IMG/VR virus record: IMGVR_UViG_3300042484_002457
Location: 124,001 to 188,000 of that record
Length of the DNA: 64,000 bases
Strand: one strand, 5' to 3'
In this document: positions 1,006-33,462 of the stretch, piece by piece
Position numbering within the stretch: the stretch's first letter is position 1
How the letters are laid out: each line of letters opens with the position of its first letter
Position numbers and translations under genes: made by a program
The notes under the pieces: generated by a model
Seen by the model: only the letters and a program-made list of their open reading frames with translations
Told to the model about the DNA's origin: nothing
The model's database searches: none

Positions 1006-1925
1006 AAGAATTATGGGTAGAAAAATATCGTCCCAACACTGTGGATGGTTATGTGTTTGTTGACACTGCGCAACGTGAGCAGGTAACACAGTGGATCCGA
1101 GACGGAAGTATTCCTCACTTGATGTTGAGTGGTAGTGCTGGTACAGGTAAAACAACCCTGGCCAAACTGTTGATCAATGAACTAGGCGTAGACGAATATG
1201 ACGTGATGTACGCCAACGGTTCAAAGGAAGCTCGCAAGGTTGAGTGGGTGGACAAGCTGATCAGCTTTTGTCAAACCATGCCATTTGGTGCATTCAAAGT
1301 GGTGTTGATTGACGAAGCAGACTACATGAATCCCAACTCGGTACAGCCCGCACTACGCAACTTGATGGAAGACTACAGCCAAACTGTGCGGTTTATTCTT
1401 ACTTGTAACTATCCCAACAAGATTATCCCGGCCTTGCACTCACGTTGCCAAGGCTTTCACATCACCAAAACAGATCATACAGAGTTCACTGCTAGAGTGG
1501 CCACTGTGCTGGTGTCAGAAAATGTAGAATTTGATCTGGACACCTTGGATACTTATGTCAAGGCCACTTATCCAGATCTACGCAAGTGTTTGAACTTGGT
1601 ACAACCCAATTCAGTAACTGGAAAACTTGCACCCCCGGGCGAAAGCGATCGTGCTGTTCGAGACTGGAAGCTGGACTGTGTGGATCTGTTCAAACAAGGC
1701 AAGATTCGTGCAGCTCGTACTTTGCTGTGTCAAAGTGCCAGTGCCGAAGAATCAGATGAGATTTTTCGCTGGATGTACGACAACCTTGAACTGTTTGGTA
1801 AAACAGCTGAGCAGCAGGATCAAGCCATTGTGATTATTCGCAACGGCATTGCCAACATTCCCTTGGTCACAGATCAAGAAATCAACCTGAGTGCTACTTT
1901 AATTGAACTTGGCAACATCGCTTGA
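1002..1925 (+). CDS. clamp loader AAA+ subunit (RFC small subunit / T4 gp44-like)
   Basis: LWVEKYRP N-terminal motif, Walker A GSAGTGKT, Walker B VLIDEAD, LHSRC motif; start reassigned to ATG 1002. Confidence 0.95.
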   Translation: MKELWVEKYRPNTVDGYVFVDTAQREQVTQWIRDGSIPHLMLSGSAGTGKTTLAKLLINELGVDEYDVMYANGSKEARKVEWVDKLISFCQTMPFGAFKVVLIDEADYMNPNSVQPALRNLMEDYSQTVRFILTCNYPNKIIPALHSRCQGFHITKTDHTEFTARVATVLVSENVEFDLDTLDTYVKATYPDLRKCLNLVQPNSVTGKLAPPGESDRAVRDWKLDCVDLFKQGKIRAARTLLCQSASAEESDEIFRWMYDNLELFGKTAEQQDQAIVIIRNGIANIPLVTDQEINLSATLIELGNIA

Positions 1926-3024
1926 GCCTGTGATTGATCCCAACAACAGGATCACATTCCTGTTGGATTGGGAACTCACAATGAAATGCAATCTGGATTG
2001 CAGCTATTGTGAAACTGGTATCTACGGTGGTCATGACAACAGCACACGACACCCGCCCAGGGCTGAGTGCTTGAAAACCATAGACTTTATGTTTGAGTAC
2101 GCTGATGCGTACATGAGCACCAAGCCCCAGGGCATTCGATATGTGATCCTGAATGTTTATGGCGGCGAAGCTTTGCACCATCCACACATTGTGGAAATTT
2201 TATCGGTGCTGCGATCTCGTCATGAGCAATACAAACAGCAATGGCATTTAACTGTTACCACAACTACCAATGCCATAATTGCGCCACACCGCTTGGACAA
2301 AATCATTCCTTTGATTGACGAGTTTACAGTAAGTTATCACACTGACAACACTCCTGAACAAAAACATCAATTTCAAGATAACTTGTTAAAAATCAAATCT
2401 GCGGGTGGTAGACTAAAGTGTGTGGTGCTCATGCATTCTGAGCCGGACAAGTTTGCCGATGCGCAAAACATGATTGAATGGCTAAAGAAAAATGATATCA
2501 AACATCTTCCGAGACAATTGGATCATGCAATTGAGCATGATTTCAACTACAATCAACAACAGGTAATTTGGTTTGAAAAACTCTACAACAAATCCCTGGA
2601 TCATGCTGTGGTACGAGACAACAAAATGGACCTGGCTGACACAGGTCGTGCCTGCTGCGGGGGCAGAAGTTTGTGTGCGGATCAAAATCGTCGAGACCCG
2701 CAAAAGTTTGTGTCAAACAAATTCCCAGGTTGGTACTGTAGTGTAAATCATTTCTTTTTGTATATCAAGCAAGTCAACGGCGAAGTCTACGTGAACAAAG
2801 ATTGCAAAATGAATTTTGATGGCACCGTGGGACCAATTGGGCATTTATCAAACACTCAGCCCATGATTGATCAGGCTCAAGATCATGATCGTCCTGTGAT
2901 ACAGTGTGCCAAACAACGCTGCTATTGTGGACTTTGTGCACCCAAGGCAGCAGATCTAGATACATATAACCACATAATGAAAAAATATGAGATACCTAAT
3001 TCTAACCTACGTGACCAGGCCTAA
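1903..3024 (+). CDS. radical SAM protein with Cys-rich C-terminus
   Basis: CNLDCSYC (CxxxCxxC), YGGEA, TTTNA; C-terminal CYCGLC. Confidence 0.85.
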   Translation: MNLATSLEPVIDPNNRITFLLDWELTMKCNLDCSYCETGIYGGHDNSTRHPPRAECLKTIDFMFEYADAYMSTKPQGIRYVILNVYGGEALHHPHIVEILSVLRSRHEQYKQQWHLTVTTTTNAIIAPHRLDKIIPLIDEFTVSYHTDNTPEQKHQFQDNLLKIKSAGGRLKCVVLMHSEPDKFADAQNMIEWLKKNDIKHLPRQLDHAIEHDFNYNQQQVIWFEKLYNKSLDHAVVRDNKMDLADTGRACCGGRSLCADQNRRDPQKFVSNKFPGWYCSVNHFFLYIKQVNGEVYVNKDCKMNFDGTVGPIGHLSNTQPMIDQAQDHDRPVIQCAKQRCYCGLCAPKAADLDTYNHIMKKYEIPNSNLRDQA

Positions 3025-5515: not shown

Positions 5516-5669
5516 AGTATTTTCTCCTTTAGTCCTCTCGGACCTGTTATTTACGGGCCTGCGCAACATGATAACACAACATTGATTTAACAACACCTGA
5601 TCACTAAATACTGACCTGGCGGCGTATTCCACAAAAACCCTGCTCTTGGTCAATCGACTAAATATACGC

Positions 5670-6278
5670 ATGGACCGAGAACTCTTTAAAGACCACACTG
5701 ATTACTGGCAAGTTGCTGACAACATCCGCGACATCTACATGAGCGACGGCAGTTTGACCACGCTGTTGGATTTTGAGCGTGTGCTGGACGAAGTTGATAT
5801 CTACGCATTTAAAAACTGGGAAATTGGCGAGCTTGTGGCCGGTCCTGAAATTGGCCGATATCGTGTGAGCTGCACATTTATGTGGCCACTCAAACTCATG
5901 CCCGATCCACGTGGCGGACGCAGACTGTTGAACTACGACTGCGAAATAAGTTATCAACGCAAAGAAATAAAGATTCCTGTAAAGATCACAGACCCCAGTG
6001 ATTATCGCCCTGGCACCAAAAAAGCCAAGTTAATGACACAGGAAGTGTGGCTGGTGGAAATTGTCATGCCCAAGGCCTTGATGAATGATATTCGCACTGG
6101 ATCAATTGAAATGGAAGATGAGGATATTGATCTTGAAGAACTGGATCAGGCCTATGAGCAAGATCTAGATCAGGAAGCCAATCAGAGTGATGAGGCTGCC
6201 GATGATGCACAGGCCAGCCTGGACACACCCAACCCTGGAGGCGCACCAGCTGCTGCGCCAGGACAACCACAGATTTAA
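5670..6278 (+). CDS. hypothetical phage protein with acidic C-terminus
   Basis: ATG 5 nt downstream of TAAATA (5659-5664); 202-aa ORF. Confidence 0.75.
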   Translation: MDRELFKDHTDYWQVADNIRDIYMSDGSLTTLLDFERVLDEVDIYAFKNWEIGELVAGPEIGRYRVSCTFMWPLKLMPDPRGGRRLLNYDCEISYQRKEIKIPVKITDPSDYRPGTKKAKLMTQEVWLVEIVMPKALMNDIRTGSIEMEDEDIDLEELDQAYEQDLDQEANQSDEAADDAQASLDTPNPGGAPAAAPGQPQI

Positions 6279-6280
6279 TC

Positions 6281-6847
6281 ATGAATACTTTTAATCCTTT
6301 TGACCCTGCCCGCCCCTTGCTGCTGGAAGGCCTACAGTACAAAGATCTTGACGGCATCATGAAACCCACAGTGCACGTGGATGAATTTTCTGCCAAACTG
6401 GGCGAAGATGCTGATGTGATTGTACTCAGCTTTTTTGTGCGCGACAAGCAAGCAGCACGTGATCTAATGGGCTGGTTTGAAAAAGGCTATGATTTTGTAC
6501 TAGATGCTGATGTCAGCCCCGGTGAAATCAAGCCTGGCCGGTATCTGGTGTATGTGGAAATTCGTCGCCGCAGCGCAGTACCTCGCCATGTTCAAACCTT
6601 GTTGGATGATCTTTCTACCCTGACAGAATTTGAGCCTGAAGACTGGCAGTTTGTGTATGAGGATGGTGACTTTGGCTGGGACCAGGATGAATTTATCAAA
6701 CGCATTCCACTAACACCCGACGCATATAGAGCCAGAAATGAATCTGATCTAAATGAAATGAGAGCTGCTGCCGGCTTGAAGCCAGTGCAGATTCATACTC
6801 CGCGGAGTGATGTCAAGGCATTAATGGCCGCAGCAGGGATATTGTAA
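6281..6847 (+). CDS. hypothetical phage protein
   Basis: 188-aa ORF coupled to the next gene by TAATG. Confidence 0.75.
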   Translation: MNTFNPFDPARPLLLEGLQYKDLDGIMKPTVHVDEFSAKLGEDADVIVLSFFVRDKQAARDLMGWFEKGYDFVLDADVSPGEIKPGRYLVYVEIRRRSAVPRHVQTLLDDLSTLTEFEPEDWQFVYEDGDFGWDQDEFIKRIPLTPDAYRARNESDLNEMRAAAGLKPVQIHTPRSDVKALMAAAGIL

Positions 6848-9800
6848 TGTTACTAAACCACTTGTTTGAAAACCGCCCCGGGGGCACACTAAACGAATTT
6901 GCACCTGCAGGTGGTGGTGGCAATCGCATGGGTGGTGGTCGTATTGGCGGTGGCGGAGATGACGATGGTGCCGGTGATGATCCCTACAAGTATCCACAGC
7001 CAGACCACTATAGCCGTAGCATAGACTTCTTTGGACGGTTTGAAGCAGATCATTTTGACGACGAAGAGTTTGACAAAGCCACAGGCGAGTTCCGGGGCTA
7101 CTGGGACGATCAAGAGGGCCGTGATCAGATTGCCTATTTCAAGTTTGACAATCCCCGACGCACCGGAGACGACGACCCAGGCATGGGCTGGTACTACGAG
7201 CCACAAAATGAAAGCATGGCAGAAGCACAAACTGAACCTGAGCAGCAACAGATTGATGCTAACCGTCAAGCAGCACTGCGTCGTGAGCGTGAACCTGGTG
7301 GCAGCGAAAAGATTGATGCCCAGCTGGCACAACAAAATGCACAGCGCCAAGAATATGAACGCACTGGCAACTTCTGGCTCAAGCGCAAAGACACACAAGA
7401 ACACATCAGTGATGAGTTTGTGGGCAAAGCTGCCGCAGTGGCTGCTGCACAAGACTTGTTGAAACAACAACCTGATTTGCGTGGCAACATTGTGATCACA
7501 GCATACGGCCCAGGCGAAACTCAGGGTGTGGCGGAAGGCTTCAAGAACATGTACGCAGAGTTCTCTGGATACGGAAACTACATGCAAGGTCGTGCTGTCA
7601 ATGTATTCAACAAAGCTGGCTTGGAGATTGTCAGCAAAGATTACACAGAAGATGATGACATACAAACCTATGTTGTAAAGGGTGACCGCCAAGCTATCGA
7701 AAAAGCCGGCGAGTTCTTGGAACGCAATCCCGAACAGTTTGGCGGATATCACTTTGTCAAGCAAGGTGTGGCGGAAGGCGGATATCCTGAAGTTGACCAT
7801 ATGCCAGGTCCCACTATAAAGAGAACACAGACTGGTTGCAAAAGATGCCACGGCAAGGGCTATGTTTATAAAACACCAGACGGTGAAGTTCATCCTATGA
7901 ATCGTCCAGATGCCAAGAAATACAAATGTGGCAAATGTGATGGTATTGGGTTTGTCAAAGTAGCAGAGCAAGGTGTGGCGGAAGGCTCACAGGATAATGG
8001 AATTAGTTTTCGTGTACAAAAGGGTAAAAATAAATTTGTCACTACCATGACAGTTAATAACGAGCAGGTGGGTGTATACCAATATGATGCTACTACAGGT
8101 CGTAGCATAGCCGAGGTTTATCCAGAATTCAAGGGCAAAGGATTTGGTAAATTATTGGTTTTACATGCTATCTATACCGCGGCCAAATTAGGATTAGATT
8201 TCCAAGAAGATGAATCAAGAACTGCTGAGTATGATAATGTGTTAGACAGTTTGAGTAGCAACAGTTATATTGTAGATGATGATGGATATTGGTACGTTAC
8301 TGGTGAGGGCGAACAATACCTACAACAATCATTAAAACAAGGTGTGGCGGAAGGCAAGAGAATGAAAACTGCCAGCGGCATGTATCGTGACCAGCATACT
8401 GGAGTTGCCTACAGAGGAAAAACAGGACAAGATGGAAACGATAGTTATATGACTCCTGATTACTTGATTCAAAAGTATCAAGAGCGTTTAGCGCAAATTG
8501 CATCAGGTCCATACAAGCGTCCTAAAGAAGTAGCACAACTAAAATCTCGTATTGCTAAACTACAAGGTCAGCAAGGTGTGGCGGAAGGTGCTCCTATTGT
8601 AGTGGCACAGGCTCCTATTCATATTCGCAATCCTAAGAAACAACAAAGTCGTCAAGACAAGCCACTTACAGCATACCAACAAGGTGTTGCAGCACAGGGC
8701 AAGCCATACAAGAATCCGCATCCGTTTGATCCTAAAGCAGGCGCAGATGTGAACTACGACCATAATCAATATCGTGCTGGATATAAGAAGCAAGGTGTGG
8801 CGGAAGGCTCCTTGGAAGAAATAGACCGTAGAGGATTCTTAAAAGGCATGGGTGCAGCGGCAGTAGCAGGCACTGGACTATCACCTATGCCTGCGAAAGC
8901 CTGGTTTTTCTTTATAATACCATTACCTAACACTAACCCAGATGCAGCGGCAAATGCATGCATGCCTCCGACTGTCCAGGTCGGACAACAGGTAAATTTT
9001 CAAAACGAATTACAGGTCATACAAAAAATACACGGAGTCTCTAATAGATGCCAAAATCCAAATATGCCTGTGGCTGTCACTATTGGCAAACCTGAACCCG
9101 TTCAAGCACCAGTAGTAAAAGAACCTCCTAATCAAAAAACACCTCCGAATTACGCATCAAGAATTATAGCTAGAATAAGACCAAACATTCATTATTCTGG
9201 CGACACCTCAGGTAATCCACGTGCAGAAATTGAAGTTCGAGTATCTTCTGATGGTACAATTACCGGAGTAAAATTAGAAAAATCAAGCGGTAACTCAGAG
9301 TGGGACCAGGCTGTAATTGATGCTGTTAAAAAAACCCAAACAATGCCTTTAGATTCTACTGGTAATGTTCCATCTATTATGATAATGGGTTTTAGACCAA
9401 TGGATAATCAATCTTTACAAAGAGAAAGCGTTGACCAAGGTGTGGCGGAAGGCGGTGAGAAAGATCGTCAATGGTCCAACAAAGACATGGAGAGGCTGCG
9501 TGTTGCTACCAGAGACTTTGATGATATAATGGCATCTGATGGACCTGACCAAACCAAGCACGATTTAATTAAGAAGCGAATTCAAACAAAACCAATGGCA
9601 GGTCCTAAAGGCGTATTGCCGGAGGAAGGTGTGGCGGAAGGCGGATACAGCGGTATCGACGATACTGACACCGTGGGCTTTAGCGTCAACAGTGAACGGG
9701 CATACAATGCAGTAATGGCTCGCTTTGGCGACCAGATTGATCATGACGAAACTTCGGGTATTCTGTATGTGCCTGCACGTTTGTGGCCCAAAGTAGAAAT

Positions 9801-10014
9801 GGTAGCTTTTGATGCCGACGGCGAAGGTGCTACACAAACTGATGGCTTGGACGAAGGCGAGAAAGTTGGCAACATGGATGCTGATGCATTTGATGCTGCC
9901 ATGGCCCGCCTTAAAAAGCTAGCAGGCGCAGGACCAATGAAAACAGTTTATGACCCCAACAAACGTGTGTATCGTAATGTGCCCACAGCAGTTCAACCAG
10001 GTACCAAAAAATGA
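6847..10014 (+). CDS. modular polyprotein (putative packaged internal protein) with QGVAEG-linked modules including a CxxCxGxG zinc finger, a GNAT domain, and a Tat signal plus TolA/TonB C-terminal domain
   Basis: 1055-aa ORF; eight Q/E-GVAEG linkers; CKRCHGKG...CGKCDGIG; VYPEFKGKGFGKLL; DRRGFLKG; SSGNSEWDQAVIDAV. Confidence 0.8.
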   Translation: MLLNHLFENRPGGTLNEFAPAGGGGNRMGGGRIGGGGDDDGAGDDPYKYPQPDHYSRSIDFFGRFEADHFDDEEFDKATGEFRGYWDDQEGRDQIAYFKFDNPRRTGDDDPGMGWYYEPQNESMAEAQTEPEQQQIDANRQAALRREREPGGSEKIDAQLAQQNAQRQEYERTGNFWLKRKDTQEHISDEFVGKAAAVAAAQDLLKQQPDLRGNIVITAYGPGETQGVAEGFKNMYAEFSGYGNYMQGRAVNVFNKAGLEIVSKDYTEDDDIQTYVVKGDRQAIEKAGEFLERNPEQFGGYHFVKQGVAEGGYPEVDHMPGPTIKRTQTGCKRCHGKGYVYKTPDGEVHPMNRPDAKKYKCGKCDGIGFVKVAEQGVAEGSQDNGISFRVQKGKNKFVTTMTVNNEQVGVYQYDATTGRSIAEVYPEFKGKGFGKLLVLHAIYTAAKLGLDFQEDESRTAEYDNVLDSLSSNSYIVDDDGYWYVTGEGEQYLQQSLKQGVAEGKRMKTASGMYRDQHTGVAYRGKTGQDGNDSYMTPDYLIQKYQERLAQIASGPYKRPKEVAQLKSRIAKLQGQQGVAEGAPIVVAQAPIHIRNPKKQQSRQDKPLTAYQQGVAAQGKPYKNPHPFDPKAGADVNYDHNQYRAGYKKQGVAEGSLEEIDRRGFLKGMGAAAVAGTGLSPMPAKAWFFFIIPLPNTNPDAAANACMPPTVQVGQQVNFQNELQVIQKIHGVSNRCQNPNMPVAVTIGKPEPVQAPVVKEPPNQKTPPNYASRIIARIRPNIHYSGDTSGNPRAEIEVRVSSDGTITGVKLEKSSGNSEWDQAVIDAVKKTQTMPLDSTGNVPSIMIMGFRPMDNQSLQRESVDQGVAEGGEKDRQWSNKDMERLRVATRDFDDIMASDGPDQTKHDLIKKRIQTKPMAGPKGVLPEEGVAEGGYSGIDDTDTVGFSVNSERAYNAVMARFGDQIDHDETSGILYVPARLWPKVEMVAFDADGEGATQTDGLDEGEKVGNMDADAFDAAMARLKKLAGAGPMKTVYDPNKRVYRNVPTAVQPGTKK
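7522..9642 (+). repeat. eight dispersed in-frame direct repeats, consensus CAAGGTGTGGCGGAAGGC
   Basis: Copies start at 7522, 7762, 7969, 8338, 8572, 8791, 9436 and 9625; 14-nt core GGTGTGGCGGAAGG is invariant; periods 240/207/369/234/219/645/189 nt. Confidence 0.95.
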
Positions 10015-10166: not shown

Positions 10167-10597
10167 GAAATTTTATCAATCTAATAGAAGCAGTGCAATC
10201 TGGTTGCCCACCAGCTACCCAGAGCATTGAATTGAATCTAAAAAATCGTCAAAAAGCCATTGAAGAATACCATTATGGTCCGTTGAATCCCAACGAGCCC
10301 AATCAAGAATACTGGGCTGAATTGGCTGACAAATGGAACACCAATGACATTGAATCAGTCAAAAACAACCGCTGCGGAAATTGTGCTGCATTTGATATCA
10401 CAGACAAAATGCTAGACTGTATTGCCAAAGGCATTGGCTCAGAGCCTGGGTCAGACCCACAAGGCACAATTGATGCTGGCGATTTAGGCTATTGTAAGTT
10501 TTTGAAATTCAAGTGTGCTGCACTGCGCACCTGTGATGCCTGGGTTGAAGGCGGCCCTGTAACAGATAAAAAAGATGAGAGCACAAGAATTCGTTGA
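10163..10597 (+). CDS. Cys-rich hypothetical protein
   Basis: CGNC...GYC...KC...TCDAW; N-terminus MRNFINLIE. Confidence 0.7.
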   Translation: MRNFINLIEAVQSGCPPATQSIELNLKNRQKAIEEYHYGPLNPNEPNQEYWAELADKWNTNDIESVKNNRCGNCAAFDITDKMLDCIAKGIGSEPGSDPQGTIDAGDLGYCKFLKFKCAALRTCDAWVEGGPVTDKKDESTRIR

Positions 10598-10871
10598 AGC
10601 TGATCTGGGTACTAACCCACGTAGAGCAGCCCGACAAGGGTCAAGACCTCCACGCGGGCACAACCCTGTGCCGCGCTATCGTAGTAAAAAAGCCGAGCCT
10701 GACCAGGAACAACTGGACGAGCTGATGTTCATGAACATGAGTCCCTGCAAAACTGACTGCTCGGGACACAGAGCAGGCTACAAATGGAGCAAGGATCGCG
10801 GCGGTGTCAGCACTGCGTCCTGGAGCGACAGCTTTAATCGCGGTGCTGAAATAGCCCGAGCAGGCTATTAA
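10575..10871 (+). CDS. hypothetical protein, putative internal head protein
   Basis: N-terminus MRAQEFVE; CKTDCSGHRAGYKW module after LDE. Confidence 0.7.
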   Translation: MRAQEFVEADLGTNPRRAARQGSRPPRGHNPVPRYRSKKAEPDQEQLDELMFMNMSPCKTDCSGHRAGYKWSKDRGGVSTASWSDSFNRGAEIARAGY

Positions 10872-17475: not shown

Positions 17476-17943
17476 ATGTGGATTTTGCACTTTCTTCCTG
17501 ACGCTGTAATACTGTGGTTCACCAACCTGTTGCTGTTTGCGGGTGTTGCACTCACAGTGGCTGGATTTTTTATTCATCGAATTCCGTCCCCGTTGATATA
17601 TCAGTATCAATTGCCATTCAAAATAGTAGGCGTTGTTCTGCTGGTACTGGGCGTGTATTTTCGTGGCGGCTATGCTATAGAAATAACCTGGCGCGAGCGT
17701 GTGGCAGAAGTAGAAGCCCAGTTGCGAGTTGCTGAACAACAATCAGCTCAAGAAAACACACGTATAGAAACTCGAGTAGTTAAAAAGACCGAATACATCA
17801 CACGTCGCGGATCAGATATTGTTCAGTATGTTGACCGTGAAATCGTCCGGTATGACACCAAGTTTGCTCCTGGCGGACAGTGTGAAATACCACGAGAATT
17901 TATCAAGGCCCACAATCAGGCCGCTGAGGCACCACCCAAATGA
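17476..17943 (+). CDS. putative inner-membrane spanin (Rz-like)
   Basis: N-terminal TM helices, coiled coil and C-terminal Cys; near endolysin and lipoprotein genes. Confidence 0.55.
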   Translation: MWILHFLPDAVILWFTNLLLFAGVALTVAGFFIHRIPSPLIYQYQLPFKIVGVVLLVLGVYFRGGYAIEITWRERVAEVEAQLRVAEQQSAQENTRIETRVVKKTEYITRRGSDIVQYVDREIVRYDTKFAPGGQCEIPREFIKAHNQAAEAPPK

Positions 17944-19118
17944 AATTCAAAGACTTTCGAACAGAAGAAAAAGTACGCTTGGATCCCAAGTGTTGGACAG
18001 GTAAAAAAATTGGCAACCCCAAGACCAAGGTCAAGGGTGGAGTTAGAGTCAACAACTGTGTGCCCGCTGAATCTGTTGAAGAGGCTGTAAATCCTGCACA
18101 ACAGGCTGCTATTGCTATTGCTAAAAAGAAAAAGAAACAAGGTCTGAAGGAAGGTACAGACAATCCCTACGGATATCGCAAAGGGCAAACTGTAAAACTT
18201 GGCAATGGTCAACAAGGTCGTGTCATTGATATTTTTGATGACAGCATTGAAGTTTTACTAGTTGGCGGCCGAACAGTCACAGTAGACTTCCGTGATGCAC
18301 GGGTAATCGACGAGCAAGGTGTGGCGGAAGATGCTGTGGCAGATTTCTTGGCTCGTGGTGGAGAAATACAAAAAGGCAAGCTACACAAACCACGCAAGGG
18401 TGAAACTTGGCAAGGATCATCACACATTGGTGCAGCAGGCGGAAAAGGTACCAAAGGCACAGTGTCGGGTCGAGCTGCTAACACCAATCCCAAAGGTGGC
18501 AAGCCAGTGGTCAGTGCTGAAGGTTTCAACCCTGAATACAACGACGAAGCAGGCATGGCCGACAACAATCTTGAAACCTTGGAACGTGCTGTGGCAGGTA
18601 TTGACGACCTAATTCAAACCGGTGATAACTTGCCAGAGTGGTGTCAAGAAAAGATCGCAGTGGCCAAGTCAATGTTGGTGGCTGTATGGGACTACATGGA
18701 AAGTGAAGAAGACTCTGAGGAAGTAGATCCTGAAGTGGACGAAATGTTTGAAGCCATGCAAGACCTGGTGTCAGAAATGGCCCAGAAAAATCGTGTGAGT
18801 GAAGATCTAGTGTGGGAACAGTTTGAAGCCATGCCGGATAACGTACTGTACGAAACAGCAGCTTGGCGTCGCAAAGAAGGCAAAAGCGCCAAAGGTGGAC
18901 TCAACGCCAAGGGTGTGGCCAGCTATCGCAGAGAGAATCCTGGTTCAAAACTACAAACAGCAGTCACAACCAAGCCCAGCAAACTCAAGCCAGGATCCAA
19001 AGCAGCCAAGCGCCGTAAATCATTCTGTGCAAGAATGGGCGGAGTCAAAGGACCAATGAAAAAGCCCAATGGCAAGCCCACACGCAAAGCTCTAGCCCTA
19101 CGTAAATGGAACTGCTAA
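17940..19118 (+). CDS. modular polyprotein, putative internal head protein
   Basis: MKFKDFRTE start; short modules bounded by x-x-E sites; QGVAED linker at 18315; basic C-terminal module ...RRKSFCARM...RKWNC. Confidence 0.75.
   Translation: MKFKDFRTEEKVRLDPKCWTGKKIGNPKTKVKGGVRVNNCVPAESVEEAVNPAQQAAIAIAKKKKKQGLKEGTDNPYGYRKGQTVKLGNGQQGRVIDIFDDSIEVLLVGGRTVTVDFRDARVIDEQGVAEDAVADFLARGGEIQKGKLHKPRKGETWQGSSHIGAAGGKGTKGTVSGRAANTNPKGGKPVVSAEGFNPEYNDEAGMADNNLETLERAVAGIDDLIQTGDNLPEWCQEKIAVAKSMLVAVWDYMESEEDSEEVDPEVDEMFEAMQDLVSEMAQKNRVSEDLVWEQFEAMPDNVLYETAAWRRKEGKSAKGGLNAKGVASYRRENPGSKLQTAVTTKPSKLKPGSKAAKRRKSFCARMGGVKGPMKKPNGKPTRKALALRKWNC
18315..18331 (+). repeat. ninth copy of the QGVAE linker repeat
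   Basis: CAAGGTGTGGCGGAAGA, in frame (QGVAED). Confidence 0.9.
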
Positions 19119-20761: not shown

Positions 20762-20815
20762 CATTTGACCTTGTGCCCCTGGGTCCTGTATAATTAAATG
20801 TACAGGACCTTTTTC

Positions 20816-21577
20816 ATGACTGACTACTACGCCACCCTGGGTGTTGCAAAAACTGCCACTGCCGAGGAAATCAAACGAGCCTATCGTCGACTGGCTTCGC
20901 AACACCATCCTGATCGGGGTGGCAACACTGCCCAATTTCAACAGATTCAAGCGGCCTATGACACACTAGGCGATGCTGCCAAACGTGCCGCTTACGACAA
21001 CCCACAGCCGCAATTTGGTGGATTTGGTTTTCAACAAGGCCAAAACATCCATGACATTTTCAGTCAGATGTTTGGGCAACAACCACGTCGTGGCCACATA
21101 CGCATGACCATTGGAGTTGACTTAGTGGATGTGATCAATGGCAGCACAAGAACTGTGCAACTGGGCACAACACAGGGCTCCAACACAGTGGAAATTGCTA
21201 TACCCCGGGGTATTGACAACGGAGACACAGTGCAGTATGGCGGAATTGGTCCCGGGGGTTCAGACCTCATGGTACAGTTTAGAGTCAACCCCATGCCCAA
21301 TTGGCGCAGAGAAGGTATAAATCTGCACACCGAAGTTCAAGTGTCAATTTGGCAACTGATCCTGGGCAGTGAAATCACCATGACTGCACTCACAGGCAAT
21401 GAGCTTACTATTACAGTGCCCCCAATGACTCAACCCAATACTGTGATGCGCCTACGAGCACATGGAGTACATCATAGGTCTGGACAGCAGGGCGACATCA
21501 TGGTAAGAATTGTGGCCCAAATTCCCCAGAACATTCCCGCCGAAGTCATGGCAGCAATACAGCAACACTGCCCGTAA
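20816..21577 (+). CDS. dnaJ: DnaJ/CbpA-like co-chaperone
   Basis: DYYATLGV, HHPDRGG J-domain, G/F region and C-terminal domain; no zinc finger. Confidence 0.92.
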   Translation: MTDYYATLGVAKTATAEEIKRAYRRLASQHHPDRGGNTAQFQQIQAAYDTLGDAAKRAAYDNPQPQFGGFGFQQGQNIHDIFSQMFGQQPRRGHIRMTIGVDLVDVINGSTRTVQLGTTQGSNTVEIAIPRGIDNGDTVQYGGIGPGGSDLMVQFRVNPMPNWRREGINLHTEVQVSIWQLILGSEITMTALTGNELTITVPPMTQPNTVMRLRAHGVHHRSGQQGDIMVRIVAQIPQNIPAEVMAAIQQHCP

Positions 21578-21644: not shown

Positions 21645-23909
21645 ATGAATCCCACCGCCGAAATTGAACACATTGTTGAACAATCTGTAGCAATTGCTCA
21701 AACATTTCAACACGAATATGTCACAACCGAGCACCTGCTGCTGGCCATGGTTCGATATGCACCATTTCGAAAAACACTGGAGAATTTTGGTGTAGAAATT
21801 GACATGCTGGATCAAGACCTAACCAGTTATCTGAGTGGGTTACAAAATCTTGTTAAAGAAAATTCAGATCTAACACCCAAAAAGACCACGGCTCTGGAGC
21901 GTATTTTTAATCGTGCCAATGTGCAGGTGATGTTTACCGGGCGTAGACAAATGTCCCTGATTGATGTTTATCTTTCAATCATGGCTGAAGGCCACAGTCA
22001 CGCACAGTACTATCTCATGAGATACGGTGTGAAGAAAGTGGAATTTGTGGAGTTCTGGCAAAAGAACTATTCTGCCCAGGCCAGTGCCACTGGCATGAGT
22101 GTGAATCAAGCCAATGACATTCTCAACGAGTACTGCGTTGATCTCAGTGGTCGTGCTGCCAAGAACGAACTTGAGCCCATGATTGGTCGAGACACTGAAC
22201 TACAGGAAATGGTCACTGTGCTGGCACGACGCTTCAAGGCCAACGTGCTCATGGTAGGCGATCCTGGCGTGGGCAAGACTGCCATCATTGAAGGCCTGGC
22301 CCAGGAAATTCAAGCCGGTCGTGTGCCTGAGTTTCTCAAGGGTCACGAAGTATGGAGTTTGGAAATTGGCTCGCTGCTGGCAGGATCAAAGTATCGTGGT
22401 GATTTTGAGGAAAAGTTCAAGGCCGTGGTGTCAGCACTGGAAGCCAAGAAAAACTGTATCTTGTTTGTGGACGAAGCGCACACCATGAAGGGTGCTGGTG
22501 CAGGATCTAGCTCTAGCCTGGACTTTGCCAACATGCTGAAGCCGGCTATTACCAAGGGCAGTTTAAAAATCATTGCGTCAACCACCTGGGAAGAGTATTA
22601 CGAAAGCTTTGAAAAGGATCGTGCCCTGATGCGACGTTTCTATCGTCTCAGCATTGACGAACCTGATGCTGCGACCACAGAAAAGATTCTTATTGGACTC
22701 AGTCCACGCCTGGAACAGTTCCACAATGTGTTGATTGACACTGAAGCTATTACTGCTGCTGTGGACTTGGCCAATCGCTACATTCATGATCGCAAGAACC
22801 CTGACAAAAGTATTGACTTGATTGATGCTGCTTGTGCTCGGGAACGTGTGAAAGATGCAGGCTTGACAACCATCAACAAAGGCATGATTGAAGAACAGCT
22901 GAGCCGTGTGACCAGTGTGCCTGTAGACAAGTTACAGAACGAGCGCAGTGCCAAGATTGTGGAGCTAGAAGGCAATATCAAGCAACGGCTGTATGGACAG
23001 GATTCAGCTGTGGACACTGTGCTGGAACGTGTGTACATTAACTTTGCTGGTATTGGCAACGAGCGACGCCCCATGGCATCATTCCTGTTCTTGGGCCCCA
23101 CAGGCACAGGCAAAACTGAATTGGCTCGACTGCTGGCCGACAACTTGGACATGAAGCTGTTGAAATATGACATGAGCGAGTTCCAAGAGCGTCACAGTGT
23201 GAGTGGACTTATTGGTGCTCCCCCAGGTTACGTGGGCTTTGAAGACGGCAACATCGGCGGCGGCAAGCTGATTGCAGACATCAGCAAGAATCCTTTTTCA
23301 ATTATCTTGTTTGACGAGATTGAAAAGGCACACCCTGACGTTGCCAACATCATGCTGCAAATGCTAGACGATGGTGTGCTGACCAGTTCAAATGGCAAGA
23401 AAGTCAGCTGCAAGAACACCATTATCATCATGACGTCTAACCTGGGCGCACGTGATAGTGAAAGCAATGCAATTGGCTTTGGATCACAAGAAAAAACTGG
23501 TGAGGACGATCGTGCACTCAAAGAGCACTTCCGCCCCGAACTGCGAAATCGTATTGATGCTATCTGCAAGTTTGGGCGCCTGGACCAACTGGCCATTAAA
23601 AAGATTGTGCTGAAGTTTGTGGCTGAATTGCAAACCAGTCTTGGCAACAAAAACATACGACTCACTGTGACCGAAGCCATGGTAGAACACTTGGCCGAAA
23701 AAGGTTATGATCCCAAGATGGGTGCGAGGCCTCTGGGTCGCAAGATTGACGAGTTACTGCGTGTGCCACTCAGCAAGCGTATCTTGTTTGATCGCCTGGA
23801 CAACTGTGATATCACAGCTGACTTGGTGGAAGGTGGGGTCAAGTTTGATATTGCAACACACGAGACCAGCTTGCTAGACAGTGACGGAATTATTCGTTTC
23901 CCAGCATGA
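21645..23909 (+). CDS. clpA: ATP-dependent Clp protease ATP-binding subunit ClpA
   Basis: Clp N domain (EHLLLA), GDPGVGKT, LFVDEAH, GPTGTGKTE, GAPPGYVG, FDEIEKAHP, MGARPL. Confidence 0.95.
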   Translation: MNPTAEIEHIVEQSVAIAQTFQHEYVTTEHLLLAMVRYAPFRKTLENFGVEIDMLDQDLTSYLSGLQNLVKENSDLTPKKTTALERIFNRANVQVMFTGRRQMSLIDVYLSIMAEGHSHAQYYLMRYGVKKVEFVEFWQKNYSAQASATGMSVNQANDILNEYCVDLSGRAAKNELEPMIGRDTELQEMVTVLARRFKANVLMVGDPGVGKTAIIEGLAQEIQAGRVPEFLKGHEVWSLEIGSLLAGSKYRGDFEEKFKAVVSALEAKKNCILFVDEAHTMKGAGAGSSSSLDFANMLKPAITKGSLKIIASTTWEEYYESFEKDRALMRRFYRLSIDEPDAATTEKILIGLSPRLEQFHNVLIDTEAITAAVDLANRYIHDRKNPDKSIDLIDAACARERVKDAGLTTINKGMIEEQLSRVTSVPVDKLQNERSAKIVELEGNIKQRLYGQDSAVDTVLERVYINFAGIGNERRPMASFLFLGPTGTGKTELARLLADNLDMKLLKYDMSEFQERHSVSGLIGAPPGYVGFEDGNIGGGKLIADISKNPFSIILFDEIEKAHPDVANIMLQMLDDGVLTSSNGKKVSCKNTIIIMTSNLGARDSESNAIGFGSQEKTGEDDRALKEHFRPELRNRIDAICKFGRLDQLAIKKIVLKFVAELQTSLGNKNIRLTVTEAMVEHLAEKGYDPKMGARPLGRKIDELLRVPLSKRILFDRLDNCDITADLVEGGVKFDIATHETSLLDSDGIIRFPA

Positions 23910-31300: not shown

Positions 31301-32476
31301 AACACCAAGACTGGCTATATTGAATTCCGTAGCCCCGGTGGTGACTGGCTGGACAGCAATTTTGACAAGATTGAAAACACCCTGTTGCGTTTTACTGTGG
31401 CCCTGAGTGCTGCTATCAATCCAGAAGCATACCGCAAAGAATACTTGACCAAGCTGTACAAGTTGTTGTCCGAAGGCATGGCGGACAAGAGTGACGTAAA
31501 CATTATTCAGTTGTTCTCCAACTACTCAGCTGGTGAACTGGACAAAGCTGCTCTAATCCGTCAAGTGCGTCAAAAGCAACTGGCTCGCAATGTTGCCAAG
31601 GGCAAGGCCACAGGCAAGATGTGGTGGAATGTTTCTAGACCAGGATACATGGGCAGCATCGAAGTTGTTGCTAACAGCAAAGAAGAAGCCATTGATGTTG
31701 CATTACAGCCGAGCAATTATCCAAACTGGGCAAGTGCTAGAAATACATTACAGGCTAAACCATTACGTCCATACCAAGAAAAGCCAAGCGCACCTGCACA
31801 ACCTGCTGCGGACAATCAAGGCAACTGGGGTATCTGGTTGGATGCTGCAGAACGCTTTGTCCGAATACCTCGCACCGAAACTGGTGGCGACGGGCAAGCC
31901 TTGCGTAGATTCTCTAGCCAAGCGGCTGCAATGGCGTTCTTGGAGCGAACTCGAGAAGAGAATCCACTAATGAGAAGAGACATCAGCATTCGCGAAATCC
32001 CTGCAGACTATCAGTGGCCACCCGTTGCACCGGCTGTTAACCGCAATACGCTGACACCAACCGGTCCTGGACCTTGGGAAGTGTTTAGAATCAGTGACGG
32101 GTCAAGTGTAGCAGAGCTGGGGCAGACCAACCGCATGAGTGCTGAAGTAGAAGCTCGCGGAGTGATTGATCAACGTGGCGAAGCACCTGAACTGTATGGA
32201 GTAAGAACTCGTCAGTCTGACGCAGCACAAGGTGGCACAGTTGATGTAGGGGGAGAAACACCTGCAACAGCACCGCAGACACTGACTCGTCCCGGACAAG
32301 GCCAACAACAGTTCACAGGCACATGGCGAGTGTTAGATCCTGAAGACCGTGAGATCTATCGCTTTAGTGGTGTGGGCAACAACCAATCAGATGCCAATCG
32401 TGTGGCCCTGAACTGGATGCGTCAAAATCCTGGTCGCATGCAAGCAGGTGTCACAGTGGTCCCGGAGATGACCTAA
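28355..32476 (+). CDS. multidomain polyprotein: nucleotidyltransferase, HExxH metallopeptidase-like and putative amidoligase domains plus C-terminal modules
   Basis: GSNAAYNYTPHSDVDLH; AHELAHVRQ; GMEFEM...EPDGSL...LEFVSPP...TNDSTGLHINIS...IEFRSPGG. Confidence 0.75.
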   Translation: MNIEELDSFNLADAVKFHNQLNPRLWDQREHLKPDVHAKLMEIARDFQEFLGVPDLEVKDITVSGSNAAYNYTPHSDVDLHLVVDMPDAKNSEVFRELFDAKKFQYNAEHDIRIGGYDVELYVQDAEQEHHSQGIYSLLQNRWISVPKRRKPDVDDISVKSKYQDVGHRIEAAIRGGDAAQMEDVWNKLRVMRKQGLEREGEFAPENIVFKMLRNNGTIGNLKQARQAVRDRELSLAEVNRPKQRVHYGFVSESPDGVNPSTKMFLEEDDAESLVTEFIFTTADKLGIKRIPKIHIHTNDDWSRENNSFGMFVPDTYELHVSLINRHPMDVMRTIAHELAHVRQHEIKPVKPGDGETGSDVENEAHAIAGIVMRDFASSHPEYFEKPAVSESSGYIPTRAQAQDPRFKMALTVDIKPGQTGKEANKLALQTDAQGRPALLMKTANLREGRMPQPSQGQGQYRDLNKPLGPETPPTMPAGTVKVDVSDVYDWYKLGSHISNLKGLGKHDFGAGPPSTIISFGDEETEHKYIQDLEKTGLTTTDIDPKDPKQPPGMKRQKTDPTYNVAEDDIVESLRQEFALLEDEYISEIKMTGKNLRAEAAQTGAQAGMEFEMIVPNVETEELDPEYEPDWDQDQRTRSFSDIRDFFHDGDYNGRREADNLMEEIQNEYEEWQAEQTDEAWARDGVDYMRDFVEVNDLFDREEAIDTARDEVIDANPDLPPESKDFQDLLRARLDELQEQFVLESFEDQGRIYNDALQAFAEEQRDEYDERSFLDDKYPMMTDIQSNFDISWPHYYNINDGQDSGEVDVDQVADEFGSYMGKPVNASRQYHGGRREAGTYVVEPDGSLEGDNPGDGGLEFVSPPMPIDEMISDLNKVKAWADKTGCYTNDSTGLHINISVPNYSIDKLDYVKLAILMGDEYILDLFGRSGNTYAKSAMGKIKSALKQKPEASAQIMDLMKQGLDGAATKAIHTGITDKYTSINTKTGYIEFRSPGGDWLDSNFDKIENTLLRFTVALSAAINPEAYRKEYLTKLYKLLSEGMADKSDVNIIQLFSNYSAGELDKAALIRQVRQKQLARNVAKGKATGKMWWNVSRPGYMGSIEVVANSKEEAIDVALQPSNYPNWASARNTLQAKPLRPYQEKPSAPAQPAADNQGNWGIWLDAAERFVRIPRTETGGDGQALRRFSSQAAAMAFLERTREENPLMRRDISIREIPADYQWPPVAPAVNRNTLTPTGPGPWEVFRISDGSSVAELGQTNRMSAEVEARGVIDQRGEAPELYGVRTRQSDAAQGGTVDVGGETPATAPQTLTRPGQGQQQFTGTWRVLDPEDREIYRFSGVGNNQSDANRVALNWMRQNPGRMQAGVTVVPEMT

Positions 32477-33462
32477 TGAGAGCACAAGAATTTGTAACAG
32501 AACTGTTTGAGCCAGGCAAAAAGTGGCAGTGGAGTTTTACTGGCAGTGAAGAAGCAGTAGCAGTATTTCATGTTGGTGAAGTGCCTTACATGTTCCATGC
32601 ATATGGCGCCGTCGGTGAATGGGAAGCAGAGTTCAAGCGGTATGGTAACAAACTAGATCGATCGCAAAAGTTTGGACTAACTGGCACTGGTAACTCAGCA
32701 GAAGTCATGAGCACAGTGGTTGACATCATGCGAGCGTTCTTGGAAAAATACAAGGACAAGATACAAGTGCTGACATTCAGTGCCAAGGAAGATTCCCGTC
32801 AGGGTCTATATGCCCGAATGGTCAAACGACTGCTGCCCGACTGGACCATGAAACAATCCGGTGAGCACTTTGTTCTTGTGGCTCCCAAACAAGATGTCAC
32901 AGAAACATGGGGTGTTGAAAAGTATCCTATTCCGCTGCCAATTGGGCAGTACCTTGCTGTTGGTAGTGATGAGTTTGCTCCGCCGGGCAACTATGCCAGT
33001 GCAGACGATCTTGTGGATGATGTGTACGACTTGATAGATGCAGGTGTTGAGCCCACAGTGGTTGCAGTTGATCCCAAGACTCTGTTGGCCACACAAGACT
33101 GGCTTAGTAACGAAGGCGGCGGCGATCCCTTGTTTGACGAGTACCCGGACAAGCCTGTGATATACAAGAAGGCAGGCAAGCTGTACATCCTTGACGGGCA
33201 TCACAGAACCACACGAGCTTGGAAAGCTGGTAGACCTATTTCAGTATACCTGTTTGGGGACGATCAACAAAACGAACTGGACGAAAACTTTGCAGATGGC
33301 CGAAACCCACAAGACAAAGGTGATTCAAAGCGTCACGGTATCAATACCAAAGCATCAGTTAGTAGTCTACGCAAAACTGCCAAACAAGGCGGCCGCAAAG
33401 GACAACTGGCACACTGGCTGGCTAACATGAAGTCTGGTAGAGCAAAGGCCAAACGAAAATGA
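32476..33462 (+). CDS. modular putative internal protein with a ParB/Srx-like module
   Basis: MRAQEFVTE start; ATQDWL...YILDGHHR; basic terminal module after LDE. Confidence 0.7.
   Translation: MRAQEFVTELFEPGKKWQWSFTGSEEAVAVFHVGEVPYMFHAYGAVGEWEAEFKRYGNKLDRSQKFGLTGTGNSAEVMSTVVDIMRAFLEKYKDKIQVLTFSAKEDSRQGLYARMVKRLLPDWTMKQSGEHFVLVAPKQDVTETWGVEKYPIPLPIGQYLAVGSDEFAPPGNYASADDLVDDVYDLIDAGVEPTVVAVDPKTLLATQDWLSNEGGGDPLFDEYPDKPVIYKKAGKLYILDGHHRTTRAWKAGRPISVYLFGDDQQNELDENFADGRNPQDKGDSKRHGINTKASVSSLRKTAKQGGRKGQLAHWLANMKSGRAKAKRK

Follow-up and report, generated by a model that had tools for sequence, protein, structure and literature searches.

A linker-delimited candidate head polyprotein with a GNAT-like module in an uncultured jumbo phage

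The window (the whole stretch of 64,000 nucleotides analysed here, positions 124,001 to 188,000 of IMG/VR virus record IMGVR_UViG_3300042484_002457) is part of a genome fragment of an uncultured jumbo phage, the fragment being recorded as viral and linear and ∼58% complete. Its phage encodes T4-type replication genes, and the clamp loader and family-B DNA polymerase are closest to those of Sinorhizobium phage Phosso, Agrobacterium phage Atu_ph07, and other jumbo phages of >340 kb (GAP32 and CBB). Directly 3′ of two ORFs matching virion structural PHROGs lies a long ORF, open under translation table 11, in which an 18-nt sequence, CAAGGTGTGGCGGAAGGC, occurs eight times with no or one mismatch (0.02 copies expected by chance; Table 1). 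These copies encode the linker (Q)GVAE/G, the slash marking the probable cut after Glu from which all module borders are counted here, and they divide the product into nine modules of 63–230 aa. Zinc knuckles, a GNAT-like domain and, according to Pfam, a Tat signal and a TonB_C/TolA domain are combined in this one ORF. Both the CxxCxGxG and the GNAT motif sets named in the first-pass annotation are indeed present, in frame within the single ORF 6847–10014, and the module borders it had drawn coincide with copies of the 18-nt linker. The polyprotein has no counterpart in PHROGs, isolated phages, or proteomes; none of its nine modules had a significant match in PHROGs, and a megablast and tblastn search of 50,697 phage records for isolated-phage relatives of the ORF returned zero matches.

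Table 1. Position of the polyprotein, its linkers, the two modules considered in detail, and neighbouring ORFs in the window.
Feature	Position	Strand	Remarks
Two ORFs upstream of the polyprotein	5646-6278, 6281-6847	+	match virion structural protein phrog_12928, phrog_13138
Polyprotein ORF (P0001), 1055 aa	6847..10014	+	eight (Q)GVAE/G linkers, giving nine modules
Linker 1	7522..7539	+	1 mismatch
Linker 2, QGVAEG	7762..7779	+	exact 18-mer; 5′ border of zinc-finger module
Zinc-finger module (M2), 69 aa, pI 9.0	7777..7983	+	CKRCHGKG 7837-7860, CGKCDGIG 7927-7950
Linker 3, QGVAEG	7969..7986	+	exact 18-mer; between zinc-finger and GNAT-like modules; DNA homology to other contigs begins
GNAT-like module (M3), 123 aa, pI 4.6	7984..8352	+	motif A KGKGFG 8131-8148; AF2 model
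Linker 4, QGVAEG	8338..8355	+	exact 18-mer; 3′ border of GNAT-like module; DNA homology to other contigs stops
Linker 5	8572..8589	+	1 mismatch
Linker 6	8791..8808	+	exact
Linker 7	9436..9453	+	exact
Linker 8, EGVAEG	9625..9642	+	1 mismatch
ORF of 98 aa starting MRAQEFVEA	10575..10871	+	leader resembles T4 capsid-targeting sequence; same on stand-alone GNAT-like proteins

The sequence V-A-E/G is present at all eight linkers and fits the pattern aliphatic-x-Glu followed by a small residue. The T4 prohead protease gp21 cleaves after Glu in L/I-X-E (PMC9026906), and giant-phage proteases likewise cleave after Glu (PMC5694885); the Val at P3 of the linker, compared with the Leu or Ile documented for T4, is a conservative departure from the T4 rule. 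Outside the polyprotein, QGVAE occurs in four further copies in three other genes of the contig (0.06 expected), and for one of these genes a virion structural PHROG was matched. Conservation of the linker extends to its nucleotides: the rare codon GCG accounts for 6.7% of the Ala codons genome-wide, yet it is used in 8/8 linkers of ORF 6847–10014 and at 41 of 42 linker sites in 32 ORFs of other contigs. As the capsid protein of relatives has YLKE/N, and not GVAE, where the maturation cut is expected, the conserved QGVAEG holds more information than a protease alone should need.

The GNAT-like module carries AEVYPEFKGKGFGKLL at 8110–8157. Motif A (module residues 50–55) has K, R, or Q at its first position in homologues, and in an alignment of 29 sequences its G53 and G55 and the adjoining K56 were invariant, the glycines and the lysine even in remote members; so were E44 and Y83. 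EDESRT..Y..V.DSL, the most strongly invariant block, does not belong to the classical GNAT motifs. In an AF2 model (pLDDT 87, pTM 0.81), four strands are followed by helix α3, helix α4, a β-hairpin, and a C-terminal helix; β5 was not called as a strand, and the N-terminal α1-α2 arm is missing, so that the four strands run straight into α3, as in minimal GNATs. All of the top 50 Foldseek matches of this model were acetyltransferases (probability about 1.0), as were the VIA matches, the best structural matches being KAT6A, Tip60, Esa1, and GCN5; sequence identity to solved structures was 10–20%. Pfam scores stayed below the cut-offs for Acetyltransf_7 (17.7; cut-off 27) and Acetyltransf_1 (15.4; cut-off 20.7), the latter being weakly matched by 20/29 family members (E at least 1.6e-4). 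When the GNAT alignment served as query in a PDB profile search, real GNAT chains were reached only at E 0.016–0.14; eS10 winged-helix chains were also among the matches, and 7/29 members matched the winged-helix family HTH_45. The top matches of this PDB search, designed 'Pizza' propellers, were rejected, as one short hairpin motif recurs six to seven times per chain. The module shares its beta sheet, motif A loop, α3, and α4 with minimal GNATs (PF14542, Acetyltransf_CG) and with the MYST core; unlike these, it scores only 18.6 against the Acetyltransf_CG cut-off of 30, and its profile search yields no cellular GNATs. MYST enzymes have a helix-turn-helix-like region after the acetyltransferase core. 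Thus, the earlier designation as GNAT stands for the fold, given motif A and the uniform structural matches, but not for membership in a known family, given the Pfam scores below cut-off and the missing α1-α2. From the model, the module is predicted to be a minimal, acidic domain of GNAT fold in which the loop that binds the pyrophosphate of acetyl-CoA is retained, with a winged-helix-like hairpin at its end.

The zinc-finger module contains two CxxCxGxG motifs about 22 residues apart, which could form one Cys4 zinc centre. The motif, which had led to the label 'DnaJ-type', is that of the DnaJ cysteine-rich domain (PF00684) and of one-zinc relatives such as Anti-TRAP; however, DnaJ has four such repeats plus a J domain, whereas the module has only two, and its score against Pfam DnaJ_CXXCXGXG (25.2 bits, and 16 bits in the context of the whole ORF) is below the cut-off of 32.7, so that the motif but not the full designation can be retained. 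An AF2 model based on five sequences was unusable (pLDDT 46). Judged from its sequence, the module is a probable basic peptide with one Cys4 zinc centre formed by two CxxCxGxG knuckles. Homologues with 88–96% identity were found in three further polyproteins (P0003, P0012, and P0093), at different positions and next to different neighbours, and a word search covering proteins of about 38–121 aa found no stand-alone homologue; the zinc-finger module was found solely inside these polyproteins. A role as fixed partner of the GNAT-like module is not established: among 161 modules neighbouring a GNAT-like module, the two are adjacent only in this ORF and at one other locus (L006), where the adjoining zinc module is divergent and 46 aa long.

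Codon composition is not uniform along the ORF. GC3 of the nine modules, in order, was.465,.512,.333,.293,.295,.315,.265,.413, and.419 (chi2 34.3, df 8, p=3.6e-5), and this within-gene spread was the largest among the 13 genes of at least 600 aa in the genome. The GNAT-like and TolA modules had been judged by eye to be richer in the AT-ending codons TTA, AAA, and AAT than the first modules, and counting confirmed this (13% and 12% of codons, respectively, versus 4–6% in the first two modules; Fisher p=1.1e-7 for GC3), whereas the zinc-finger module differed from the first two modules only at p=0.03. All module values are within the range of whole genes of the genome (0.215–0.628, mean 0.428, sd 0.071). 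In 25 of 27 distinct ORFs from other contigs, a set that includes one near-identical copy of the window's ORF, GC3 of the GNAT-like module was low irrespective of the surrounding composition; low GC3 thus travels with the module.

The GNAT-like module occurs between the same linkers in 94 other metagenomic polyproteins, where its neighbours belong to 43 different module families on the upstream side and 38 on the downstream side. Homology at the DNA level, shared with 16 other viral contigs, breaks off within a few bases of its two linkers, and the identity of the module is 70–98% across phages whose polymerases are 63–87% identical. It is absent from other proteins that share the N- or C-terminal module of the ORF, being present only in P0001 and P0002. 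The idea that the modules are exchangeable cassettes is therefore upheld by the shared linker flanks, the many neighbour families, the homology blocks ending at linkers, and the GC3 differences; when modules were searched separately, homologues recurred in other polyproteins with the same linker and in contexts that were not fixed. Exchange of modules between polyproteins and between phages probably takes place at the linker, by recombination on its 15–18 conserved bases, and the GNAT-like module would accordingly be a mobile cassette that arrived secondarily in this polyprotein class. That the modules also differ in origin, as had further been proposed, is not shown. An exhaustive profile search of 1.8 billion proteins returned 177 clusters only for the GNAT-like family; all clusters inspected were phage proteins of this type, none of them a cellular relative, and the whole family appears to be of that kind. 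The top row of this search, a 3962-aa protein with 58 matched stretches, was a repeat artefact.

Five related contigs, with DNA polymerases 63–87% identical to that of the window, were inspected for a head protease. Peptidase_S77, the gp21-family prohead protease, was found in four of them (85–99 bits), where its gene adjoins a scaffold-like gene and the Gp23 major capsid gene. Neither the gp21 protease nor the Gp23 capsid protein was found on the present contig, a 58% fragment, and the control search found these families in no control genome, so that the blank carries little weight. Stand-alone GNAT-like proteins start MRAxEF[ILV]xE (for example, MRAYEFIAE; one locus starts MIKHFNQFIAEA), which resembles the T4 capsid-targeting sequence MKTYQEFIAE (10.1101/2021.01.19.427310). 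The polyprotein itself starts MLLNHLFEN, with a possible L-F-E/N site and no obvious T4-like leader.

These observations make it fairly probable that the ORF encodes a head polyprotein that is cut after the linker Glu by a gp21-type protease, whose modules are ejected with the DNA and whose linkers double as exchange joints. The polyprotein would be incorporated into the prohead core, where a T4 gp21-type prohead protease would cleave after the Glu of each (Q)GVAE/G linker; nine small proteins would thereby be freed, kept inside the capsid, and leave it together with the DNA at infection. The GNAT-like domain would then most likely acetylate a macromolecule inside the cell that has just been infected. 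Points against this reading are the YLKE/N site in the capsid protein of relatives, the Val at P3, the N-terminus of the polyprotein, the Pfam GNAT scores below cut-off, and the blank searches for a protease or capsid gene on the contig and for PHROG or isolated-phage relatives. Cleavage, packaging, and ejection, as well as zinc binding, catalysis, and the target of the modules, are what we infer from the sequences and models. More tentatively, and at somewhat less than even chances, these jumbo phages may possess an in-frame cassette system, in which one DNA-conserved linker of 15–18 bases is both head-protease site and recombination joint.

The ORF might instead encode an uncleaved multidomain 'polyvalent' protein that acts as one piece, whether in the cytoplasm or, like the virion RNA polymerase of phage N4, after being packaged uncut, QGVAEG being a flexible spacer spread by duplication. 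Polyvalent phage proteins do join GNAT, Pol-beta nucleotidyltransferase, NUDIX, ParB, and deaminase domains in one chain, some of them packaged unprocessed (PMC5512222), and the same Pfam families are annotated on metagenomic relatives of the polyprotein. However, the spacer ends in Glu in every case and, like gp21 sites, has an aliphatic residue two positions ahead of the cut; the motif recurs in other proteins of the phage, and the same modules also exist as small separate genes with a T4-like cleavable leader. T4 internal proteins are also similar in size to the 63–230-aa modules. We consider the uncleaved form improbable. Only marginally less so is the possibility that the GNAT-like module is packaged but non-catalytic, a structural or binding domain on a GNAT scaffold that anchors the protein in the scaffold core or binds DNA or protein via its winged-helix-like end. 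The missing α1-α2, helices that usually give the acceptor site its shape, the HTH_45 and eS10 matches, and the position of the top invariant block outside the classical GNAT motifs would agree with this, and a conserved assembly contact would also suit the high identity of the module across divergent phages. Against it stand the invariance of the motif A glycines and lysine even in remote members, and the existence of minimal GNATs of ∼100 aa (Acetyltransf_CG), which the module weakly matches; moreover, the module is missing from the rest of its polyprotein class, so that assembly of the polyprotein does not depend on it.

A stronger competitor, though still the less likely account, concerns codon composition: the GC3 differences may reflect module-specific constraints (amino-acid make-up, translation speed, or mRNA structure) in a long-resident gene rather than different origins. 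Every module lies inside the spread of the genome's own genes, the low GC3 in 25/27 ORFs would be expected from an intrinsic constraint just as much as from transfer, and no possible donor relative was found outside this phage group. Yet heterogeneity is the highest among the 13 long genes, the homology blocks ending at linkers demonstrate exchange of the GNAT-like module, and this module is unique to the present member of its polyprotein class.

If the ORF is a head polyprotein, its nearest known counterparts are the T4 internal proteins, which are small and diverse, are built into the prohead core, are cut after Glu (aliphatic-x-Glu), and are ejected with the DNA (PMC9026906; 10.1101/2021.01.19.427310). 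Likeness to IPI, IPII, and IPIII lies in the MRAxEFIxE leader of the stand-alone GNAT-like proteins and the gp21-family protease of related contigs. In contrast to these, a single reading frame here strings together up to 13 cargo units with one and the same motif at their borders; this motif is longer (QGVAEG), is conserved at the nucleotide level, and has Val at P3. The first-pass annotation had likened the GNAT-like module to T4 Alt as an injected host-modifying enzyme, and such a role is plausible. Alt is an ADP-ribosyltransferase, no such (ART) domain was among the Pfam matches of ORF 6847–10014, and the analogy is functional only; the small T4 internal proteins, with capsid-targeting leader and gp21 cut, are the closer analogue.

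Polyvalent proteins (PMC5512222), in the available part of their description, likewise carry disparate enzymatic domains in one phage polypeptide that adjoins structural genes and is predicted to be injected, and they share recurring GNAT, Pol-beta NTase, NUDIX, ParB, and deaminase domains with the system described here. The same part of Iyer et al. 2017 describes two GNAT families of the RimI type, and it has the proteins processed by peptidase domains that they themselves carry (PMC5512222); a regular repeated linker matching a head-protease site and a minimal GNAT without α1-α2 set the present polyprotein apart from the proteins as described there. In the jumbo phages phiKZ and SPN3US, many head-internal proteins are cut after Glu at A-X-E or S/A/G-X-E (PMC5694885). 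Their ejection proteins belong to another phage lineage, depend on a protease of the S80 family, and are encoded by separate genes, as opposed to a linker-delimited polyprotein.

Proteins that are packaged in the head and injected reach the cell before any other phage weapon, yet beyond T4, P1, and the phiKZ group few of them are understood. The linker provides a readable rule for a large group of uncultured jumbo phages, in which the stretch from one QGVAE/G to the next is one probable cargo unit, and it could also serve as a candidate rule by which foreign proteins are loaded into capsids of this type. If the cassette system is real, a module of any kind could change polyprotein or phage without losing its packaging, release, and injection, and the system would be a protein-level counterpart of the integron for injected effectors. 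The GNAT-like module would be a natural first target for learning what an injected acetyltransferase does. It was also the module most often recovered in a quick catalogue of 150 polyproteins, a frequency biased upward because these polyproteins had been collected for their similarity to a query containing it. The catalogue holds 259 module families, 179 of them singletons, and includes nucleotidyltransferases, deaminases, NUDIX, and ParB.

Both CxxCxGxG motifs and the GNAT motif-A-like stretch named in the first-pass annotation were found, and all lie inside one ORF coding for a polyprotein. This ORF contains eight copies (7522-9642), with at most one mismatch, of the 18-mer CAAGGTGTGGCGGAAGGC, which codes for QGVAEG, compared with 0.02 in shuffled sequence. 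Cutting the product after the linker glutamate results in nine modules of 63-230 aa, among them the zinc-finger module M2 and the GNAT-like module M3. Queried with the complete ORF, a word search recovered 307 proteins from metagenomes, in most of which (Q)GVAE is repeated; in isolated phages, no homologue of the polyprotein was detectable. The GNAT-like module was present in 94 of the 120 proteins listed (74-98% identity), nearly always bordered by GVAE before and by QGVAE or LNE after. Splitting 150 distinct polyproteins at their linkers yielded 662 modules in 259 families (179 singletons), and the GNAT-like family had 43 neighbour families upstream and 38 downstream. The N-terminal module of the ORF is common to 21 proteins and the C-terminal module to 19. 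Because the GNAT-like module occurs, among these, only in the ORF itself and in its near-identical copy P0002, it represents an insertion in this class of polyprotein. DNA homology to 16 other viral contigs (84-95% over 377-392 nt) started no more than 4 nt from the first base of the upstream linker in 13 contigs, and ended no more than 3 nt from the last base of the downstream linker in all 16. The unit of exchange is the module together with both flanking linkers. The varied neighbours and the homology borders at the linkers thus support the cassette idea more strongly than a first reading of the sequence could know.

Features of the window and of the surrounding record
Feature	Position	Strand	Remarks
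Polyprotein ORF	6847-10014	+	1055 aa; holds M2 and M3 entirely
M2, zinc-finger module	7777-7983	+	69 aa
CKRCHGKG motif	7837-7860	+	in M2
CGKCDGIG motif	7927-7950	+	in M2
M3, GNAT-like module	7984-8352	+	123 aa
AEVYPEFKGKGFGKLL, GNAT motif-A-like stretch	8110-8157	+	in M3
M6, Tat and TonB_C/TolA module	8806-9450
ORF with CTS-like leader MRAQEFVEA	10575-10871		N-terminal reading
ORF with CTS-like leader	32476-33462		N-terminal reading
ORF with CTS-like leader	81449-82093 (genome)	-	N-terminal reading
Basic ORF with one QGVAE site	17940-19118		392 aa
Further linker-type site	18315-18332		nucleotide-level linker conservation
ORF with J-domain-like N-terminus	20798-21577		..DYYATLGV..EEIKRAYR, read by eye only
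ATP-dependent protease or Clp-like ATPase	21645-23909		754 aa; phrog_4871, E 8e-238; adjoins J-domain-like ORF
Radical SAM domain protein	1903-3024		phrog_1802, E 3e-9; directly after clamp loader

Homologues of M2 (88-96% identity) were found inside polyproteins only (P0003 876-944, P0012 685-752 and P0093 376-441), with linkers on both sides and different neighbours each time; the word search, within its length limits, found no stand-alone small version. At L006, a locus on another viral contig, a divergent zinc module of 46 aa, which has both motifs as well, lies directly upstream of a GNAT-like module, the sole case besides the polyprotein ORF in which a zinc module adjoins it. According to precomputed Pfam labels, many metagenomic relatives (for example P0020, P0022, P0025 and P0026) have a second, different GNAT-type module beside the minimal one, and also nucleotidyltransferase, cytidine deaminase, NUDIX, ParB, GIY-YIG and cytidylyltransferase domains.

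The linker is conserved at the level of DNA. GCG accounts for 6.7% of the alanine codons of the genome, yet it is used in all eight linkers of the polyprotein, and at three of the four QGVAE sites in other genes. Among 42 QGVAE sites in 32 distinct ORFs of other contigs (loci within L004-L044), the exact CAAGGTGTGGCGGAA was present at 30, GCG at 41 (versus 7% elsewhere in those ORFs), GGT at 42 (versus 46%) and GTG at 35 (versus 18%). This conservation is not accounted for by selection at the peptide level alone. QGVAE, expected 0.06 times in the contig proteome, occurs four times in three proteins besides the polyprotein; one of the three has a match to a phage protein family (PHROG) of virion structural type. 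The prohead protease gp21 of T4 cuts after Glu in L/I-X-E (PMC9026906), and giant-phage proteases likewise cut after Glu (PMC5694885). The linker fits this pattern and is a probable cutting site of a head protease. In four of five related contigs, whose polymerase is 63-87% identical to that of the window, a Peptidase_S77 gene lies beside genes for a scaffold-like protein and for the Gp23 capsid protein; the head gene order (L045-L052) is acidic protein, gp21-like protease, gp22-like scaffold and Gp23 capsid protein. As the N-terminal region of this capsid protein contains YLKE/N (slash, presumed cut) at the place analogous to the T4 maturation cut, the relatives' protease probably needs aliphatic-x-Glu only. 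A protease content with so little would mean that the longer QGVAEG is kept for another reason, namely for the linker as DNA. The simplest reading is that recombination or gene conversion has repeatedly passed through the linker and so keeps its codons, although the RNA or DNA sequence could also have a function of its own with the same effect. The basic 392-aa ORF has one QGVAE/D site in the same codons. Over its last ∼90 residues it matches eight PHROGs to which no function is assigned, and its product may be a further head protein that undergoes processing.

The designation GNAT holds for the fold of M3, but not for membership in a Pfam family. All GNAT matches of M3 in Pfam were sub-threshold; 29 diverse relatives gave weak matches to Acetyltransf_1 (20), Acetyltransf_7 (17) and Acetyltransf_CG (13), and in seven the C-terminal part matched a winged-helix family. 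The AlphaFold model built from the alignment of these 29 was confident (pLDDT 87, pTM 0.81) and begins with four strands, followed by one helix behind the motif A loop, another helix, a β-hairpin and a closing helix; helices α1-α2 are absent. The best 50 Foldseek matches in the PDB were all acetyltransferases (E about 2e-3, probability about 1.0), among them MYST enzymes, PanZ/YhhK, IAA acetyltransferase and SpeG. Motif A reads K/R/Q-G-x-G-x-G-K, with two glycines and the lysine invariant among the relatives. Also invariant are a glutamate in strand 4, a tyrosine opening the second helix, and the block EDESRT..Y..V.DSL; this Glu and Tyr appear to be positioned where GNAT catalytic residues often lie. 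The sub-threshold Pfam scores, the confident model, the structural matches and motif A together led us to name M3 a predicted minimal GNAT-fold domain, member of no Pfam GNAT family. The label DnaJ-type zinc finger for M2 is, in turn, appropriate for the motif but not beyond it: the module (basic, pI 9.0, two motifs spaced by about 22 residues) scored 25.2 bits against DnaJ_CXXCXGXG (cut-off 32.7), and its structure prediction was unusable (pLDDT 46). Judged from its sequence, M2 would best be described as a single-zinc knuckle peptide of the DnaJ/Anti-TRAP motif type, and such a small basic peptide could bind nucleic acid or protein.

GC3 of the nine modules (in order.465,.512,.333,.293,.295,.315,.265,.413 and.419) was heterogeneous (chi2 34.3, df 8, p=3.6e-5). 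Of 12 further genes of ≥600 aa that were divided by the same partition, only one gave p<0.01, and the polyprotein ORF had the widest within-gene spread of all 13. The by-eye impression that the GNAT and TolA modules are AT-richer was correct (p=1.1e-7 versus the first two modules; zinc-finger module, p=0.03). All values lie within the range spanned by complete genes of this genome, and the effect is of moderate size. Different origins of the modules, as proposed from this impression, were not demonstrated. Among 1.84 billion representative proteins, a profile search reached 177 GNAT-like module clusters only (E≤1e-3) and no cellular GNAT relatives of M3, so an outside donor cannot be named; the remote clusters inspected were polyproteins, or short proteins with leader-like N-termini. 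In 25 of 27 distinct, phylogenetically non-independent ORFs, the GNAT-like module had a lower GC3 than the remainder of the ORF that contains it (means.262 versus.334, Wilcoxon p=8e-7). Low GC3 belongs to this module wherever it is located, and spread from a common AT-richer pool fits this equally well as intrinsic constraint.

For the function of the GNAT-like module, an injected host-modifying role is still the best hypothesis. T4 internal proteins are targeted by a 10-residue leader, MKTYQEFIAE, which is then removed (10.1101/2021.01.19.427310). Short stand-alone GNAT-like proteins start with MRAxEF[ILV]xE, for example MRAYEFIAE (MIKHFNQFIAEA is the start of one locus), and the remotest family members have similar N-terminal starts. 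Starts resembling the T4 capsid-targeting sequence (CTS) were also read on three further ORFs (MRAQEFVEA, MRAQEFVTE and MKIQDIITE, in the order of the table), which are candidate stand-alone internal proteins. The first of these contains a Cys-rich module that recurs in the relative P0122, C-terminally, after a GNAT module. T4 internal proteins and giant-phage ejection proteins are already established (PMC5694885, PMC9026906), as is the "polyvalent protein" idea, injected GNATs included (PMC5512222). In the literature outside subscription journals, no mention was found of a QGVAEG linker in phages or of a linker-delimited polyprotein of this kind.

The source record is a linear viral sequence of 209,543 bases, judged 58% complete, with the window at bases 124001-188000. 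Recognized genes include a T4-type clamp loader, a family-B DNA polymerase, a large ATP-dependent protease-like ATPase and an endolysin. Closest to this polymerase, at 43-52% identity, are those of Sinorhizobium phage Phosso, Agrobacterium phage Atu_ph07 and other >340-kb jumbo phages, including Cronobacter GAP32 and Pectobacterium CBB. The two ORFs that immediately precede the polyprotein match "virion structural protein" PHROGs. Module M6, with the lowest GC3 of all nine (0.265), combines a twin-arginine (Tat) signal, RRGFLKG, that falls just short of the Pfam cut-off (21.8 versus 22.7 bits) with a clear C-terminal domain of the TonB_C/TolA type (TonB_2, 66.8 bits). This make-up points to a Gram-negative host, and if M6 is delivered by the capsid, its Tat signal would mean that it is exported again, into the periplasm of the host.
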